The notes under the pieces are model-generated. The model worked only from the letters and a program-made list of their open reading frames with translations. It had not been told where the DNA came from and made no database searches. Positions 25,076 through 63,871 of a stretch of DNA of 64,000 nucleotides are shown one piece after another. How positions within the stretch are numbered: the stretch's first letter is position 1; every line of letters starts with the position of its first letter. Position numbers and translations under genes: made by a program. This DNA comes from Dimorphilus gyrociliatus (lineage: Eukaryota; Animalia; Annelida), in the NCBI GenBank assembly GCA_904063045.1, contig CAJFCJ010000021.1, positions 620,001 to 684,000 of the forward strand. Direction: 5' to 3'.

Positions 25076-27417
25076 ATGCCGTCAACTGCTAAAGACTATG
25101 CAAGGTAAGGTTTGTTAACTATCTAAATTGGTTTAATAGGTTGTTTACATTGAGCGATAATACAAACAATTTTCTAATAGGCAATTAGGTATTATAAAAA
25201 AGTGCAGTTTAAAAGGCAGATCGAATCTGAGAGTATGTTCACGTAAGTTTACGATTAATCATCTTTTAAGAATTGTTTTTGTATATATTTTAATAATTGA
25301 TGGACAGGTCAAAAATTTAGTTATTTTGTTGTTATCGATTTTGAGAGTACTTGTTGGAAAGAGGAGAAATCAATTGTTCAAGAGATCAGTAAATATACTC
25401 GTATCTTTATTTTAATATATATAATACAAACAAATTATAAATAACTTAGTTGAATTTCCTGCTGTACTAATAAATTCATCAACTGGTAAAGTGGAATCAG
25501 AGTTCCACTATTATGTGCAACCGCAAGAACATCCAATTCTAAGTGATTTCTGTAAAGAATTAACAGGAATAACGCAGGTAGAGATTCGGAAAATATATAA
25601 CTTATCCATTTTATGATATACAAGAAATTTAGTTATCAATTGATTTTGATAGGCTCAAGTAGAAAGAGGAATACCATTAAGACTATGTCTCGACCTATTT
25701 TGTAAATGGATGAGGAAGATGTCAGAGGAAAAAGGATTCGTATTCGATAATCGTTTAGGGAAAAAAGCATGCGCTTTTATTACTTGGTCAGGTAATAATT
25801 AATTGAAAATAAACGAATAGTATAAAGTGTTGCATAATAAATAGAATAACATATATACATCTTTATAGATTGGGATTTAAGCGTTTGTCTACATAATGAA
25901 TGTAAGAGAAAACAGATAAGAAAACCCATCGAATTAAATAGTTGGATAGATTTAAGAAGAGTTTTTAAGGTATTTTTTTATCTTATCTTTTAACGAATAT
26001 GTCTCTGACTGTACTACAATGTTTTTTGCTATGTTTAGAGATTTTATGGGAAAACTCCCGCTGGTCTTGAAGGAGGACTAAAATATGTAGGTCTAGAGTT
26101 TCAAGGAAGACAGCACTCAGGTAATCTAGTATATTTCTTATGTCCAAACTAGTATATGTCATCTAAGCTACAGTTACAGCAATAATAATTAAGAGCACCT
26201 ATATAATTACCTATAGGTTTAGAAGATTCGAGAAATACTGCAAAATTAGCATACAAGTTAATATGTGATGGCTGCGTTTTAACTCTGACAAGAGATTCTA
26301 AAGATGTATGGCAATATTTTGTTATTATTATCAATTTACAAGAGTTTTTAATAAACTTTTTTTCCACTTGTAGATATGCGCTACTACTCTTACAACTAGA
26401 ATTATTCACTCTCCGGATGTTAGTATTGATAATAACGATGATAATAACAAGAATAATATCATTAGTTTAAGGGAGAAAGAAACAAACAATACAAGAAGTA
26501 CATATCAATGTATTAATAGAAAATTTACAGCTGTTGATAAGATCAGTTCACCAACTATTAAGAAAGATAATAATAAGCTCTTTGCAATATCCGAAAATGA
26601 ACAACGAAAGATGAAAAAGAAAATACTATTGAATCCTTTTCAAATAAAGGATAATTCAAGAGAAATTAGTAAAGAGAATAAGGAAGAAAGTGAAAAAACT
26701 GAGAAAATGACGAACAATCATGATAATGGTAATGAGAAGCTGATTACAAAAAGTCGTATTATTATTAAGACTAGAAAGTTTAGTAGACCTCAATATGAGA
26801 TAATTCAGGAAAAGATTCCTATTAAGGACGCTTCAAAAAATCAGTTATCGGAATGTAAATGGGCATTGTCGAAGACTAGAAAGATTAATGATCAATTGAA
26901 AGAAAAAGAACAATTGGGTAAAGCGTCTACACCTCAAAGAACAAATGGAACAAGTAATCAGTCCAACGAATTCAAAACGCCGAATAGTATTGTTTTAAAT
27001 ACATCGAAAAATAAGAGTAAAATGTTAAAAACGCCACCGATGTGCCAATGTGGGCGAAGAAGTAAACGTAAGTGCGTTCAAACACCCGGTCCAAATATGG
27101 GAAGGAATTTTTATACCTGTTCCTACGGAAGAAGAAGTTCAGGATCTGGTGAAGGTTGTAGTTTTTTTTCGTGGGAAGGAGAAGATAAATCTGCTACAAA
27201 CTTAAAATCGGATTCAACTTACAGTTATTCGATAAGAGAGGAATATATGTCTCCAGAAATGAAGAGGGCAAAAATGAATTTATCATCCGAGACGGTTGAT
27301 ACAAACAGAAAGGAGAAGATTATCGAAAAGAACCAAGAGAATGTTTTTAAACCAGTATTAGTTTACTCTGCAAAAAATCAATTAAAGAGTAATCTTTTAA
27401 AAAATCCGTTTTTATGA
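25076..27417 (+). CDS. ERI2: ERI2-like DEDDh 3'-5' exoribonuclease with C-terminal GRF zinc finger, 584 aa
   Basis: Exons 25076-25104, 25181-25242, 25308-25388, 25450-25577, 25653-25791, 25869-25969, 26039-26120, 26217-26305, 26374-27417 total 1755 nt, in frame. Motifs VVIDFESTCW, EIIEFPAV, FCKELTGITQ, TWSDWDL, QHSGLEDSRNTA; GRF finger PPMCQCGRRSKRKCVQTPGPNMGRNFYTC. Confidence 0.95.
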
Positions 27418-57973: not shown

Positions 57974-58558
57974 TTAAGATTTCCAGAAATTTGGATCATT
58001 ATCAATCTTTCTTAGGAAATTTTTATACCACCCTTGCAGAGCTGACATTGGGACAAAGGTCTCTGATGCTGCAAAGTGTATTTGCTCCCTTTTAATACTA
58101 AAAGAGGAAATATAGTTAAATAAGTTCTCGCACATCTTGAACGAGAATTCTTGAAAATTCGCTAAGTTTGATGGAACTGTATTACTAGCCGGAGTTTGAT
58201 TATATATTTCTGCTGCACTTTCAATTGCTATACCAAGTTGAGCACAGGTTGACGACATAGCAACAGAATTCATCCCATTACCCGATTCTTTCGGTTTTAC
58301 GCCGCTTATTTTAAACATTGCACTCGGCTTCTCATTGGTTACGTGTCCCAACAAAGTCCAACTTTGCTCGGAACCACTACCAGGCCAGCTAAGATAGATG
58401 GCTGCTCCGTAATTGTCAGGTATTGGTGTTTGTCCGGTCAAAAATACGACAATGTGATGAACATTCTCGTGGTCAGGAATATTGCAGACTATTTGATTTT
58501 CAGATATTTGGACAAGTTCAGTTTGAACCATTTTACCTGGAACAATTACTCCAAACAT
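57974..58558 (-). CDS. HIKESHI: Hikeshi / OPI10-family Hsp70 nuclear import carrier, 194 aa, intronless CDS
   Basis: Starts MFGVIVPG (ATG at 58558-58556). Family motifs HHIVVFLTGQTP, GAAIYLSWP, WTLLGHVTNEKPSAMFKIS, AQLGIAIE, ENLFNYISSF, FVPMSALQGWYKNFLRKIDNDPNFWK. Confidence 0.93.
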   Translation of the reverse strand: MFGVIVPGKMVQTELVQISENQIVCNIPDHENVHHIVVFLTGQTPIPDNYGAAIYLSWPGSGSEQSWTLLGHVTNEKPSAMFKISGVKPKESGNGMNSVAMSSTCAQLGIAIESAAEIYNQTPASNTVPSNLANFQEFSFKMCENLFNYISSFSIKREQIHFAASETFVPMSALQGWYKNFLRKIDNDPNFWKS

Positions 58559-58836
58559 CTCTCTGTTTATTTGGGTTAAGCTAATGATATAAGTGTTGGA
58601 AAAGTCACTTGCGGGGAAAAGACTATAGCGATAATACAATAGTTTTAAGTATAAAAGTTGTTTTCGTATTAAATAAGTTCGCAAATTTTCCAAGTTCAGC
58701 CCCTGCTCTCTCCCCTAGACAATACCTAAATGTCGGTGAGTAGTTTTACAGCTGAAATACTACTCAATTACATAAACAGAGCGATCAATAGTGCAACATA
58801 ATGAAATTGTAAACTGGTATAATTTTCAAGTGATAA

Positions 58837-58845: not shown

Positions 58846-59643
58846 GACTTTTTTGTTGTCTACAATAAAGATCAGTAAGTCGTAGTCCTAAATAAATGTT
58901 ATTTATCTTTTCTTTTACATTTATTGCAAACATCCGTTAAATTTCAATTTATTAGTAAAGACAGCTGAGCAAACAATTTTTCACCTTCTGCACTAGAAAG
59001 ACCTAGTTATTATTTTGTATACGTGGAAGAACTAGATAATAATTGATTATAGTAGACGTATAGGACTGATTGATTTTAATAATAGAACGAAAGTAGCACA
59101 GTTACTAAACTTGTAGAATCAAGAATCATAAAGAATAAACAACAAAGTGTATTCGTAAGGTCGTTTTAAGAAAAGTAAGAGTTAAGGGGCAGAGAGAGAG
59201 AAACGTCCTGCGGATAGAAAGAAAGTACATATTAAATTGATGCTTGTAAACAATAAACAAACACACAGAATTTTGACCAGCAAAATCGTTCGCTTTTACA
59301 ATGACCCTCTTTAAAATGAAGTAAAAGAAGGATAAATGAAATTATCAGACTGATTACTATTTCTTCTCCTTTTCCCAAAGTTGAAAAAATGATGTGTTGG
59401 CAAGTTCATAGTTTAAAAATCACGAGACGTATATCTAACATAAAATATAGGCTTATAAAAATTATCTTATTTTTTTATTATCAATAGGATTACTTACTGT
59501 TCAAATTCCAATTTCAATCGGCCTTTAGCTTTAATGTAGGACAATTTGTTTTCTTTTTGAGTATCAGACTTGTTTAGTTTTACATTGAAGAAAATTTTGC
59601 TATTTTCTAAACCCTCCCCTTTTAAAGGACTGAAGGGTTAAAA

Positions 59644-60493
59644 ATGGCTTTAGAAATCATAGGAAAGAAGACCGTGACGAATCCAACGAACAATGAGGTT
59701 AGACGAAATACTTAAATCCTTTGATATTAATTAATTAAACTATTAATTACGGGTGATATAATCAATATTTAGGTCGTTCAACTGGAAGACTTGTGGAAAG
59801 AAAGGAACGTAGTAATATACTTTTTAAGGAGATTTGGATGATCTCTTTGCAGATTATATATTAAACAGGTACGGTATGAAACTAACTATTGGACTGTATT
59901 GTAAAATGCTTTGCTGTATTCTTTTTGGTAGTTATCGGAAGTTGCAAACATTTTAAAAGAGCATAATACAACATTTGTTGTCGTTGGCGTAAGAGAAGCT
60001 GAAAGTAGTTTTAAAAGCTTTGTGGATGGGAAATATTTGGATGGAGGTAATAAACTATTAATTGTTCTAGAAGCTCTTTAACTATTGGGCACTACATCAG
60101 AATGTTAAATACTAAAATCTCTTTCTTTCAGAGGTATATACAGCTCATAGGAGACTCTATAGAGAAATTGGACTTAAAAGATATTCTCTTAAGGAAATTG
60201 GTTGGTATATGTGTACAATGTTCTGTAGAAAAGCGTCTCTTTCCAAAATGGTGAATATTATGAGAAAAAATATTTCCGGTGATTTAAGAGGCGATGGTCT
60301 TCGACTTGGTGGAACATTCGTGGTCAAAGACGGCCATTTAGCTTATAGTCACGTAATGGAAGCCCCTGACGATCATCCAGATGTCGCTACAATATTGAAA
60401 GCCCTTGAAATTCAAACTGCCACTAGCCAAAAAACAATTACACAACAGCCGAAAGTTATCTGTGATGAAGATGTTTGCAAACCGATATATTAA
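59644..60493 (+). CDS. PRXL2B: Peroxiredoxin-like 2 / SelU-family thioredoxin-fold selenoprotein (closest to PRXL2B/FAM213B), 208 aa, with Sec (TGA) at 59839-59841
   Basis: Exons 59644-59697, 59773-59868, 59932-60046, 60132-60493 join in frame. Sequence VQLEDLWKERNVVIYFLRRFG-U-SLCR..LYREIGLKRY..ISGDLRGDGLRLGGTFVV..HVMEAPDDHP..VICDEDVC parallels human PRXL2B (ELRSLW..LRRFGCVVCR..LYKELGFKRY..PQCDREV). SECIS in the 3' UTR. Confidence 0.88.
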
Positions 60494-60551
60494 ATAATAT
60501 ATAGATAAAGTGTATATAATGTAAACAGTATCGAAACTCGTTTTCACTTAG

Positions 60552-60623
60552 GTTGAATATTAATGACGTTAAAATGGATAAACCATTTATGGATCCATTT
60601 AACTGATATATATATACGTTTTT
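60552..60623 (+). promoter_or_regulatory. Type II SECIS element in the 3' UTR of the PRXL2B-like gene
   Basis: ATGAC core (60563-60567); helix II gttaaaatggat (60568-60579) pairs with atccatttaac (60593-60603) with one bulge; unpaired AAA (60580-60582); apical mini-stem cca-ttta-tgg; 3' core TGAT (60604-60607). AATAAA follows at 60667. Confidence 0.88.
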
Positions 60624-61782
60624 AACTGATATTGTAAACGATTCATGCTGTTAGAAGTAATTAACAAATAAAATTTTTAATAATACACTCAATGAGAAAT
60701 AATCCAATTCTTTATCAGATATTCATTATATTCATTTTTCTTCCATATCTTAAGAATATGAAAGATTTTCCATTACATAACGTTGGGAATAGATAAGGCT
60801 ATTTTAGTGGGGAAAAAGAAAACAGAATAGCTCTTTAGTCTAGCCGTTCCTTTTTTTTTGTCACCGATTGTAGAAGTCGTGTAATTACTTATCTGTCTAC
60901 ACTTTCTTATCAATTCTGTTTTTTAGAGTTTTCTCTTTATCTTTAAATTTATCTTTCATAGAAAACCGTGGTGTCAAGTTAAATATTTCTAGTAAAGTTG
61001 TTAATACTTAAACGATATTCTTTAGAAGGATTAGTAATAATCAGAATCTTTAAGGTTATCAATTCGACCTTTGTTAGTTTTTCTATCACTCTTTCCTTAT
61101 CCTTTTAATTATTATTAATTTATTAATTGAATAAAGCTAATGTAAGACATGAACATTATAAACTTCTAGATAAACAGACAGATAGATAGATTGGGATATA
61201 CACGTTGTAAATTTACTATATTTACATTTCTATTAATATATAATGATGCTAAGTTGAAGGGAGATTAAAAAGGAAAATTAAGCTAAATAATGTTAAATAG
61301 ATAACTCATATTAATTTATTAATTGATAATTTCACTAGACTCTATAACTATTAGCCTAGAAAGAGGAACTTTAAACAAGCTGTTAAGAGTTGTCGACTTT
61401 TCTCCGTTGAAGGTAACAAATAAGGGTTGCAGTATTGATTTTTTTCCCCCCTGACTTTCTTCTGCAATTTTATCAACACCGCTTTATTTTATTATTATTA
61501 TCAAATTTCCAATCTTAGTTTACAAAACATGATTTAAACTAGATTTAAACCCGGCTTAATATTGGATTAGCTTTGAGAAATACTATATTGAATGAGGATA
61601 CTATTTTAAGTAAAAATTAGAAAAAAACATAGCCAATTAGCAACCCTGTCATTTAGTAAGTGCATAGCTATTGACTAATAATAAAGTTAATAGTCTTTCA
61701 GCAATTTCTCCTTTTCTTTTTTTTTTGCTTCAAAAGAGAAAGAATAACAGTATTATTACAAGTGATTTCAATGGCGTCCTTA

Positions 61783-61800
61783 CTAACCCTAACCCTAACC
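61783..61800. repeat. Short interstitial telomeric repeat (CTAACC)3 = (TTAGGG)n on the minus strand
   Basis: ctaaccctaaccctaacc, followed by degenerate ttcctaagcc. Confidence 0.8.
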
Positions 61801-62197
61801 TTCCTAAGCCTGCAATACATGTTTGCATGTATTTTCTAAGATAGCGAATTGTGTTTATTCGCGTATTATCTATAATAATTAGTAAAACTTATAAGATATA
61901 TTTACACTAGTATATAGTATGCATGCTATTTACATAGTATACATGCATAGTACATTTATATTACAATAATCTTATTCATAAGCAGTTGACCTTTTCCACG
62001 TATCCAATTCTTTTTTTTGTTAACCGGGTCAAAATATTTCATAACGAGAATCAATAGGATTTTTTTAGTCCTATGTGAAATACATAGAGAGCAATTATAT
62101 GCCAAAAAAAGCATTAGACTGGCTGTATCTCAACATTCGTTTCGGATCCTAAAGAGTTATCAGATAAGATAAGAATCCACACTTTATAAGTAGCAGA

Positions 62198-62270: not shown

Positions 62271-63614
62271 ATGTCTTTCTCTGGTATGTGGAAATTGGTT
62301 GAAAGCGATAAATTCGATGATTATATGAAGGCAATCGGTTTGTATTTTTTATATACAATTTGCTTTTTTTCGTTTATAAAGAAAGAGAAAAAAGCATCAT
62401 TTTCTATTAGAAATCGACTAATCTTCGTTTTTGATCGATATAAGTACGTTTATATAAAGAATATATATATATATAAATTTATATATATGGAATATAAGTG
62501 TCTATATTTGATTCAAGAGCTTAAATGGAGCAAACGCTGGTTGTATCCTATTGTAGGACTAAAACACTATAAAAGTATCTTATTACATGCTTTAAACAAT
62601 TGTTAGCAAGCTATTTCTTTCCAAGTCTTATCGCTATTTATATCATTATCGCTGTTTTCGTAGTTGTAAACTCTCTTTTGAATGAAATTATAAAAGAGTA
62701 TGATTAGGATCAATTAAAAAGAGATCTCTCAGATTACGGATACAAAATGTCCTTATAACTCATCTTAATTATCTTCCCCAGACAGCAAAAAGTAGTTGCA
62801 TCCTGTGTAATAATTTTCTTTATCTAGCAGAAGTTAGATTACAGTGATATCGTATCCTCTTTATATTATAAATTTTTATCTGAAAGTACCGTATTTGTAA
62901 AAGATTAACGACTATTCCCAACCTACTATGTACTTAAACCGTAATATTTATCAACATAATTAGTCATTATAATCTTTCATTGAACAATAGGCGTTGGCTT
63001 GGCACTCCGAACCATCGGTAACAAAACTAAGCCATCTCAAGAAATCATCATCGATGGAGATAACTACACCATCAAGACTATTTCTACTTTTAAAAATACC
63101 GAAATCAAGTTCACCCTCGGTACTGAATTCGATGAAAAGACCATCGATGGAAGAAACGTAAAAGTAAGTAGAAAACAATAAAATAAATGTTATAGGTGTG
63201 GTTCAGGAAATAACTATTTCTTCACTCTCTTTTTAGACTACTCCAACTAAAGATGGTAATAAGATCGTCTTACACCAAAAGGGTGATCCCGATTCAATCA
63301 TCACTAGAGAGTTGGTCGATGATAACACAATGAAAATGGTAAGCAATATGTCCTAAAAAAAAACAATAAAACCTTACTAAGAAAAAACAGAGCAAACATT
63401 CTGTTTACATGGATTTATCACAAAAAAACACATTTAACTTTACTATTGTTTAGTGACATTTAAACAAGATAAAGTCAACAAATAGTATTAGTTATCTTCT
63501 AATATAATAAAAATAGTTAAATAATAAAAACTATTAAAATTTATAATATATTTCAAATTTCAGGTTCTTACTTGCAAAGGTGTCGTTTGTACAAGAGTTT
63601 ACAAGAAAGAATAA
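62271..63614 (+). CDS. FABP: Fatty acid-binding protein (iLBP family), 130 aa
   Basis: Exons 62271-62337, 62991-63163, 63237-63338, 63564-63614. FSGMWKLVESDKFDDYMKAIGVG..TISTFKNTEIKFTLGTEFDEKTIDGR..ITREL..CTRVYKK, with the R..RxY fatty-acid carboxylate-binding residues intact. Confidence 0.96.
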
Positions 63615-63871
63615 GCACTTGGCTTTTGGTCTTAGTCTCTAGTTGCCTAGAAAAATAAAATGTTCTTACAATTTTTAATTGTCTTCTTTGCTTTATTTTA
63701 CTATTCGTTAGATGAAAATTTTCGCACTGCTTATACAGTATATACTATATATATATGTGCAGTATATATATATATTGTATAATATAAATGTTCAACAATT
63801 ATACGTACATAGTTTATTCCGGTCAAAAGATGTCAACTATTTTAGACCGACTACTACTAAGATTATTAATT

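Follow-up and report, generated by a model that had tools for sequence, protein, structure and literature searches.

Does an in-frame TGA in the second coding exon of an annelid gene end the protein after 40 residues, or is it read as selenocysteine (Sec)? The question is raised by a 64,000-nucleotide (nt) stretch of the Dimorphilus gyrociliatus genome (assembly GCA_904063045.1, contig CAJFCJ010000021.1, positions 620,001 to 684,000; hereafter the window, by whose positions all coordinates are given). A sequence-only reading of this stretch had proposed a Sec-containing gene of the PRXL2B-like branch, with a SECIS element (selenocysteine insertion sequence) within its 3' untranslated region (UTR). 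Our analysis supports that reading: the locus is very probably a functional D. gyrociliatus selenoprotein gene, encoding a PRXL2B-type ("SelU" family) thioredoxin-fold oxidoreductase of 208 residues with a predicted Sec.

A four-exon gene with one in-frame UGA

Two public runs, X1 and X2, contain the locus, and we aligned their contigs with 59400-60900. Together with the sequence itself and with three relatives from other samples (L001, L003 and L004, described below), they give the following gene model.

59577..59643, plus strand: 5' UTR; transcript contigs start at 59577 (X1) and at 59590 (X2, with adapter letters directly before)
59644..59697, plus strand: coding exon 1 (18 codons, MALEIIGKKTVTNPTNNE); ATG at 59644 with A at -3 and G at +4; splice joint in contigs
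59698..59772, plus strand: intron 1, 75 nt, GT..AG; joint in contigs of both runs
59773..59868, plus strand: coding exon 2 (96 nt, 32 codons; redox motif RRFG-U-SLC-R); sequence and contigs
59839..59841, plus strand: TGA, codon 41, predicted Sec, aligned with the first Cys of CxxC; sequence, homologues, RNA contigs, L001, L003 and L004
59869..59931, plus strand: intron 2, 63 nt, GT..AG; contig joint
59932..60046, plus strand: coding exon 3 (115 nt); sequence and contigs
60047..60131, plus strand: intron 3, 85 nt, GT..AG; contig joint
60132..60493, plus strand: coding exon 4 (362 nt; core of the AhpC-TSA_2 domain, GDLRGDGLRLGG, CTMFC, CDEDVC; TAA at 60491-60493); sequence and Pfam
60554..60616, plus strand: SECIS, form 2; sequence, Rfam SECIS_1, centroid fold and comparison with relatives
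60667..60672, plus strand: AATAAA, likely polyadenylation signal; sequence

Joined by script, the four exons make 627 nt and 208 codons; codon 41 is the only in-frame TGA, and a TAA closes the frame. The codon lies in the context IYFLRRFG-TGA-SLCRLY; both its placement at the first-Cys position of CxxC and the 208-residue frame, as originally proposed, were thus re-derived from the sequence. The open reading frame (ORF) list for the locus holds the last 94 residues alone (60209-60493), as had also been said of it.

Transcripts retain the UGA exon

Contigs of both runs excise exactly 59698-59772, 59869-59931 and 60047-60131. Since the contig piece over 59771-59866 has no differing letters, the TGA is present in the mature mRNA; with exon 2 and its TGA retained in contigs from two runs, the codon is in these contigs neither TGC or TGT nor spliced out, either of which the sequence-only reading had named as fatal to its claim. 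X1 is a coral-tank metatranscriptome from 2024 (labelled "coral metagenome") that covers 59577-60452 at about 1% difference from the window, and because of that difference it is independent of the assembly. Its variants include a synonymous C>T at 59658 and a T>C at 60321 that changes Val to Ala in the GGTFVV motif. This suggests that coral tanks harbour D. gyrociliatus or a strain very close to it.

At the other end of the gene, a 549-nt contig of X2 follows the window collinearly from 60430, takes in the SECIS and extends past 60900, so the SECIS region is transcribed contiguously with the coding sequence. The segment 60563-60607 would then belong to the 3' UTR, as the sequence-only reading requires.

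A form-2 SECIS element follows the stop codon

The core of the element occupies 60563-60607, with its AUGA (60563-60566) 69 nt past the stop codon and its UGAU at 60604-60607. Helix 2 has 11 base pairs (bp) with one bulged A (60568-60579 with 60593-60603), and the apex consists of an unpaired AAA (60580-60582) followed by a 3-bp mini-stem, CCA/UGG (60583-60585 with 60590-60592), closed by a 4-nt loop. The quartet, helix 2, unpaired AAA and extra mini-stem that define form 2 are therefore all present, and the sequence, the centroid fold and the Rfam alignment concur on them. The geometry is that of the type II SECIS originally described 3' of the stop and upstream of AATAAA, and it is joined by covariation in relatives (below).

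A pattern-plus-helix SECIS scan of both strands of the window returned three sites, where 30 shuffles gave 0.6 on average, and the site at 60554-60616 has the longest and best helix of the three. The chance of such a site falling in the correct 200 nt on the correct strand is about 1 in 1000. The two further sites, with 10 helix pairs each, lie at 26720-26770 (plus strand) and at 62916-62967 (minus strand, antisense within an intron of a downstream gene for a fatty-acid-binding protein (FABP)); they have no obvious selenoprotein context and are probably due to chance.

Relatives keep the UGA, the reading frame and the SECIS

We compared the gene with relatives recovered from other samples: L001 and L002, two mRNA contigs that lack introns and have the same 208 codons; L003, which is more distant (223 codons); and L004, a genomic contig in which the exon lengths are identical (54, 96, 115 and 362 nt), the introns are GT..AG and codon 41 is TGA. 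All retain the TGA, which stands at the same codon in L001/L002, L003 and L004. Among D. gyrociliatus and these relatives the ratio of non-synonymous to synonymous change (dN/dS) is 0.08-0.13, with dS of 1.1-2.6. Over the nine codons that immediately follow the TGA, D. gyrociliatus and L001 show four synonymous differences and one non-synonymous difference. Purifying selection acts on the codons before the UGA as well as on those after it.

The hairpin is conserved as well. Each relative has an ATGA…GA hairpin 50-61 nt after its stop codon; the match to the Rfam model SECIS_1 reaches 26.9 bits for L004 and 17.3 bits for L003. When the four SECIS sequences are aligned, 92% of cells pair and 4 of the 13 pairs change on both sides (U-A/A-U, G-C/A-U, G-C/A-U and A-U/U-G); when the 3' partners were shifted by one to three columns as a control, no more than 58% of cells paired and no more than one two-sided change was seen.

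These data bear on the reading in which the UGA simply terminates translation, as it does in the standard code, and the locus is either a decaying pseudogene or the source of a 40-residue peptide whose mRNA falls under nonsense-mediated decay. The Rfam score of the SECIS, which lies below threshold, is in keeping with such a reading. Against it, X2 contains the transcript at high word depth, dN/dS stays at 0.08-0.13 over all 208 codons, those after the UGA included, at dS above 1, the TGA is kept at the same codon in four lineages, and the SECIS is conserved with compensatory changes; we regard termination as extremely improbable. Selection, the kept TGA and the compensated SECIS argue instead for recoding of the UGA with a functional SECIS, and translation past the UGA under such an element is the sole reading that fits all the comparative data.

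Homologues carry cysteine or UGA at the same position

The Pfam domain AhpC-TSA_2 (PF13911) matches the exon-4 piece at 35.8 bits (cutoff 27, E 1.2e-8). Word-indexed searches with this piece and with the public protein recovered just the window's own protein; an exhaustive search of representatives with the exon-4 piece, together with a profile search, gave a homologue set of 159 proteins. RRFG-C-xx-C occurs in 106 of these and RRFG-W-xx-C in 13 (P0014, P0030, P0035, P0040, P0042, P0045, P0049 and P0054-P0059), all of the latter from public metagenome sets. In the two W forms whose DNA was inspected, P0040 (L001) and P0042 (L003), the codon is TGA, as it also is in the genomic relative L004, which does not belong to the 13. 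The TGA of D. gyrociliatus is thus aligned with the first Cys of its homologues, as the sequence-only reading had it, and with a printed W that is TGA in both DNAs inspected.

The printed W is also what could be cited for a third reading, in which near-cognate decoding or a variant code puts a standard amino acid (Trp, Cys or Arg) at the UGA. The W appears at the Sec site because metagenome gene callers used a code in which TGA means W (code 4), here applied to eukaryotic mRNA contigs, and neither of the two W forms inspected as DNA translates to the query under the standard stop set. Every relative examined has a SECIS along with the UGA, the UGA stands where the catalytic Cys would be, the typical place for Sec, and invertebrate Sec forms of this branch are on record (PMC3473315). 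We give decoding as a standard amino acid scarcely any credence and retain Sec as the predicted residue. Public metagenomic protein sets thus contain such selenoproteins, masked by a W at the Sec site.

Two other groups of homologues were looked at in the same set. Proteins of 165-169 residues were considered as Sec forms truncated at the UGA and rejected, since inspection showed them to be rotifer-type Cys forms. A Mytilus coruscus protein named PRXL2B (P0114, 221 residues) is without the RRFG-CxxC motif, and its gene model may have a similar fault.

The protein groups with PRXL2B

All named matches of the profile search are prostamide/prostaglandin F synthases (PGFS). Comparisons of fold and structure were made with the product of the closest relative, P0040 (208 residues, W at the Sec site), which is about two thirds identical to the D. 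gyrociliatus protein (67 of 208 codons differ non-synonymously). Its AlphaFold model (pLDDT 87) has a strand at 30-35 and a helix from 42, with residue 41 as the N-cap. Compared by Foldseek with the Swiss-Prot models, it matched 11 PGFS/PRXL2B entries first, at E 7e-19 to 6e-17; these are aligned end to end with TM 0.80-0.84 and 27-32% identity. PRXL2A followed at 4e-13 to 8e-11 (19-24% identity) and PRXL2C at 2e-10 to 1e-9. Solved-structure matches comprise PGFS 9us9 and 9usa only (PDB profile, E 2e-55 for 9us9).

A maximum-likelihood tree groups the window's protein with P0040 (99/93) and then with P0042 (100/95), and places this group inside a clade, supported at 98/99, that includes PGFS from vertebrates, tunicates and arthropods. 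Sec forms are scattered among Cys forms in the tree, which calls for three or more changes of state. The assignment to a PRXL2B-like branch, made at first from the sequence alone, thus stands with the names of the matches, the Foldseek order of PRXL2B over PRXL2A and PRXL2C, and the PDB matches to PGFS.

The public gene model skips the catalytic exon

The deposited protein DgyrCDS12822 (176 residues) carries PF13911 and consists of exons 1, 3 and 4; exon 2 is left out, and the exon 1/exon 3 junction runs from …TNPTNNE directly into LSEVANIL…. That annotation would hide the gene had been anticipated. Comparison with DgyrCDS12822 bears this out as far as the loss of the selenoprotein from the public proteome is concerned; the predicted route, truncation, was wrong, and the loss comes about through skipping of the UGA exon.

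Taken at face value, the deposited model says that exon 2 is normally skipped, that the product is a motif-less protein of 176 residues, and that the UGA exon is an occasional, non-productive inclusion. Besides the deposition of DgyrCDS12822 in that form, the 96-nt length of exon 2, which preserves the frame on skipping, speaks for it, and contigs are no proof against a rare isoform. Contigs of both runs nonetheless include exon 2, and no joint from 59697 to 59932 was reported. Exon 2 holds the catalytic RRFG-UxxC and the preceding beta strand, so a protein made without it has no active site. The exon is moreover conserved in three relatives, with mostly synonymous change after the TGA, and a conserved SECIS would be purposeless if the exon were skipped. 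Normal skipping of exon 2 is therefore very unlikely, if slightly less so than termination or decoding as a standard amino acid, and we conclude that DgyrCDS12822 is an annotation artefact in which an in-frame, 96-nt UGA exon was skipped. The four-exon model corrects a public gene model that lacks the catalytic exon; with the deposited proteome, the enzyme would be scored as inactive and motif-less, and the selenoproteome of a model miniature annelid would be undercounted.

Observations that weigh against a functional selenoprotein gene

Several results count against the interpretation of the locus as a functional PRXL2B-type selenoprotein gene, and they concern the transcript, the SECIS, the decoding machinery and the subfamily in turn. 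Among the contigs of X1 and X2 there is no exon-2-skipping joint (59697 to 59932), but contigs lose rare variants, and a minor isoform without exon 2 could for that reason go unseen. The contig that links the coding sequence with the SECIS continues past AATAAA, the cleavage site being unmapped, and the assembly graph branches at 60459.

For the SECIS, a search of the 197-nt 3' region gave a full-length SECIS_1 match to 60554-60616 at 25.2 bits (E 0.0045), which is below the gathering score of 35, and an Rfam search of 3.5 kb gave no SECIS match, the filters having removed it. Because the match appears in the 197-nt search only, and there below gathering, we take the Rfam score as supportive and not as decisive. 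The folding energy of the 81-nt hairpin stretch is no better than that of shuffles (z -0.42), an unremarkable value that follows from its AT-rich composition (22% G+C).

Neither a tRNA-Sec nor any other tRNA was found in the 64-kb window, the rest of the genome lying outside the search. The tree, finally, was unrooted and built without PRXL2A or PRXL2C sequences, and the subfamily call is that of the Foldseek ranking and the names of the matches; on the modelled structure, these support a protein that would be closer to PRXL2B than to PRXL2A or PRXL2C.

Proposed mechanism

By established Sec biology, SBP2 would bind the AUGA/GA kink-turn of the SECIS and recruit eEFSec with Sec-tRNA[Ser]Sec, upon which the ribosome would insert Sec at UGA-41 with no termination. 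SPS2 has been reported in annelids generally (PMC4561486). By analogy with the family, Sec41 would be the attacking nucleophile and Cys44 the resolving residue, and the resulting Sec41-Cys44 selenenylsulfide would be recycled by a thioredoxin-type reductant. The activity that characterises the PRXL2B subfamily is thioredoxin-dependent reduction of prostaglandin/prostamide H2 to F2alpha. The annelid substrate may be an endoperoxide or a peroxide, as for mammalian PRXL2B.

Relation to known SelU proteins

That invertebrates carry Sec forms of this branch has been known since 2012, when Jiang et al. (BMC Genomics 13:446; PMC3473315) described more than 10 Sec-SelU genes in six invertebrates, one of them counted in the annelid Capitella teleta. 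Most of these genes belong to a "SelU3" branch of the prostamide/prostaglandin F synthase type, whose Cys forms were confined to deuterostomes (PMC3473315). Among vertebrates, Sec occurs in SelU1 only (Mariotti et al., 2012; PMC3316567). The sequence-only reading had stated that Sec forms exist in the SelU family, and they are documented for the PRXL2B-type branch itself (PMC3473315). Because Jiang et al. had described them, the gene is not new in kind; it is an added instance of a described kind. None of the papers in the library searched connects D. gyrociliatus with selenoproteins.

The D. gyrociliatus gene shares with invertebrate SelU3 (PMC3473315) its branch, the UxxC motif, an AUGA-type SECIS in the 3' UTR and the fate of being mis-modelled or lost by standard annotation. 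It differs in lineage, which is Dinophilidae, and in forming a long branch of its own with three relatives (100/95); the Capitella sequence was compared by description only. Vertebrate PRXL2B/FAM213B (human Q8TBF2, zebrafish Q6NV24, PDB 9us9) is the best match in structure and sequence, with RRFG-CxxC-R in the same place and GD..GD..GG, and the C-terminal C-x4-C of Xenopus PGFS reads CNDDVC where the D. gyrociliatus protein has CDEDVC. The vertebrate proteins are Cys forms without a SECIS, whereas the D. gyrociliatus gene has both UGA and SECIS. The SelU1/PRXL2A selenoproteins of fish and birds likewise have Pfam AhpC-TSA_2, UxxC and SECIS-dependent Sec; they belong to a different subfamily and are a clearly weaker match than PRXL2B.

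Besides the redox motif, the protein has two further cysteine pairs. The C-terminal Cx4C (CDEDVC, 60467-60484) is common to many PRXL2B proteins, including that of Xenopus. A CxxxC (CTMFC, 60213-60227) lies in the helix before GDLRGDG (GDxxGD motif); it is also found in P0040 and L004, is enlarged in P0042/L003 to a Cys-rich CQYCCNSCTFCC...C stretch, and was not seen in 89 other full-length homologues. One could see here a dinophilid-type, fast-evolving sub-branch of Sec-PRXL2B that acquired the helix CxxxC on top of UxxC and the C-terminal Cx4C. If the genome has further Sec-PRXL2 loci, this would point to selenoenzymes that expanded within the lineage and contain a redox relay with several centres or a metal site, and not to one ordinary orthologue; we consider this improbable, if less remote than the alternatives to Sec weighed above. 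The gene is an expected member of a described family, correctly caught by the sequence-only reading and useful as an annotation fix, and it adds a data point to the published picture in which the PRXL2B branch kept Sec in non-deuterostomes and switched to Cys in deuterostomes.

Neighbouring genes and other sites

The upstream neighbour, on the minus strand at 57974-58693, is a homologue of Hikeshi, with both the N and the C Hikeshi-like domain of Pfam. A contig of X2 has a minus-strand intron at 59435-59497 in the Hikeshi 5' UTR and reaches 59619 (59498-59619). Because 59619 passes the mRNA start of the selenoprotein gene (59577/59590), the two genes stand head to head with overlapping 5' ends.

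The downstream neighbour is the FABP gene (62272-63620, plus strand), cytosolic in type; its exon 1 begins MSFSGMWKLVESDKFDDYMKAIG and its exon 2 (62991-63163) has a Pfam Lipocalin/FABP match. A 369-nt contig of X2 (word depth about 2350) joins 60430-60459, in the last coding exon of the selenoprotein gene, to 61965 through about 62303, in the FABP 5' region. The skipped segment, 60460-61964, starts with CT and ends with AC; read on the minus strand, it is a canonical GT(AAT)..(CAC)AG intron. That the joint leads to an alternative 3' exon of the selenoprotein gene was considered and rejected, since the ends are CT..AC on the plus strand; the joint looks like that of a spliced antisense transcript whose end lies within exon 4.

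At 61899-61959 on the minus strand, an AT-rich near-palindrome has a weak match of mir-297 type in Rfam (27 bits, E 0.09; gathering score 90), which is most likely due to chance.

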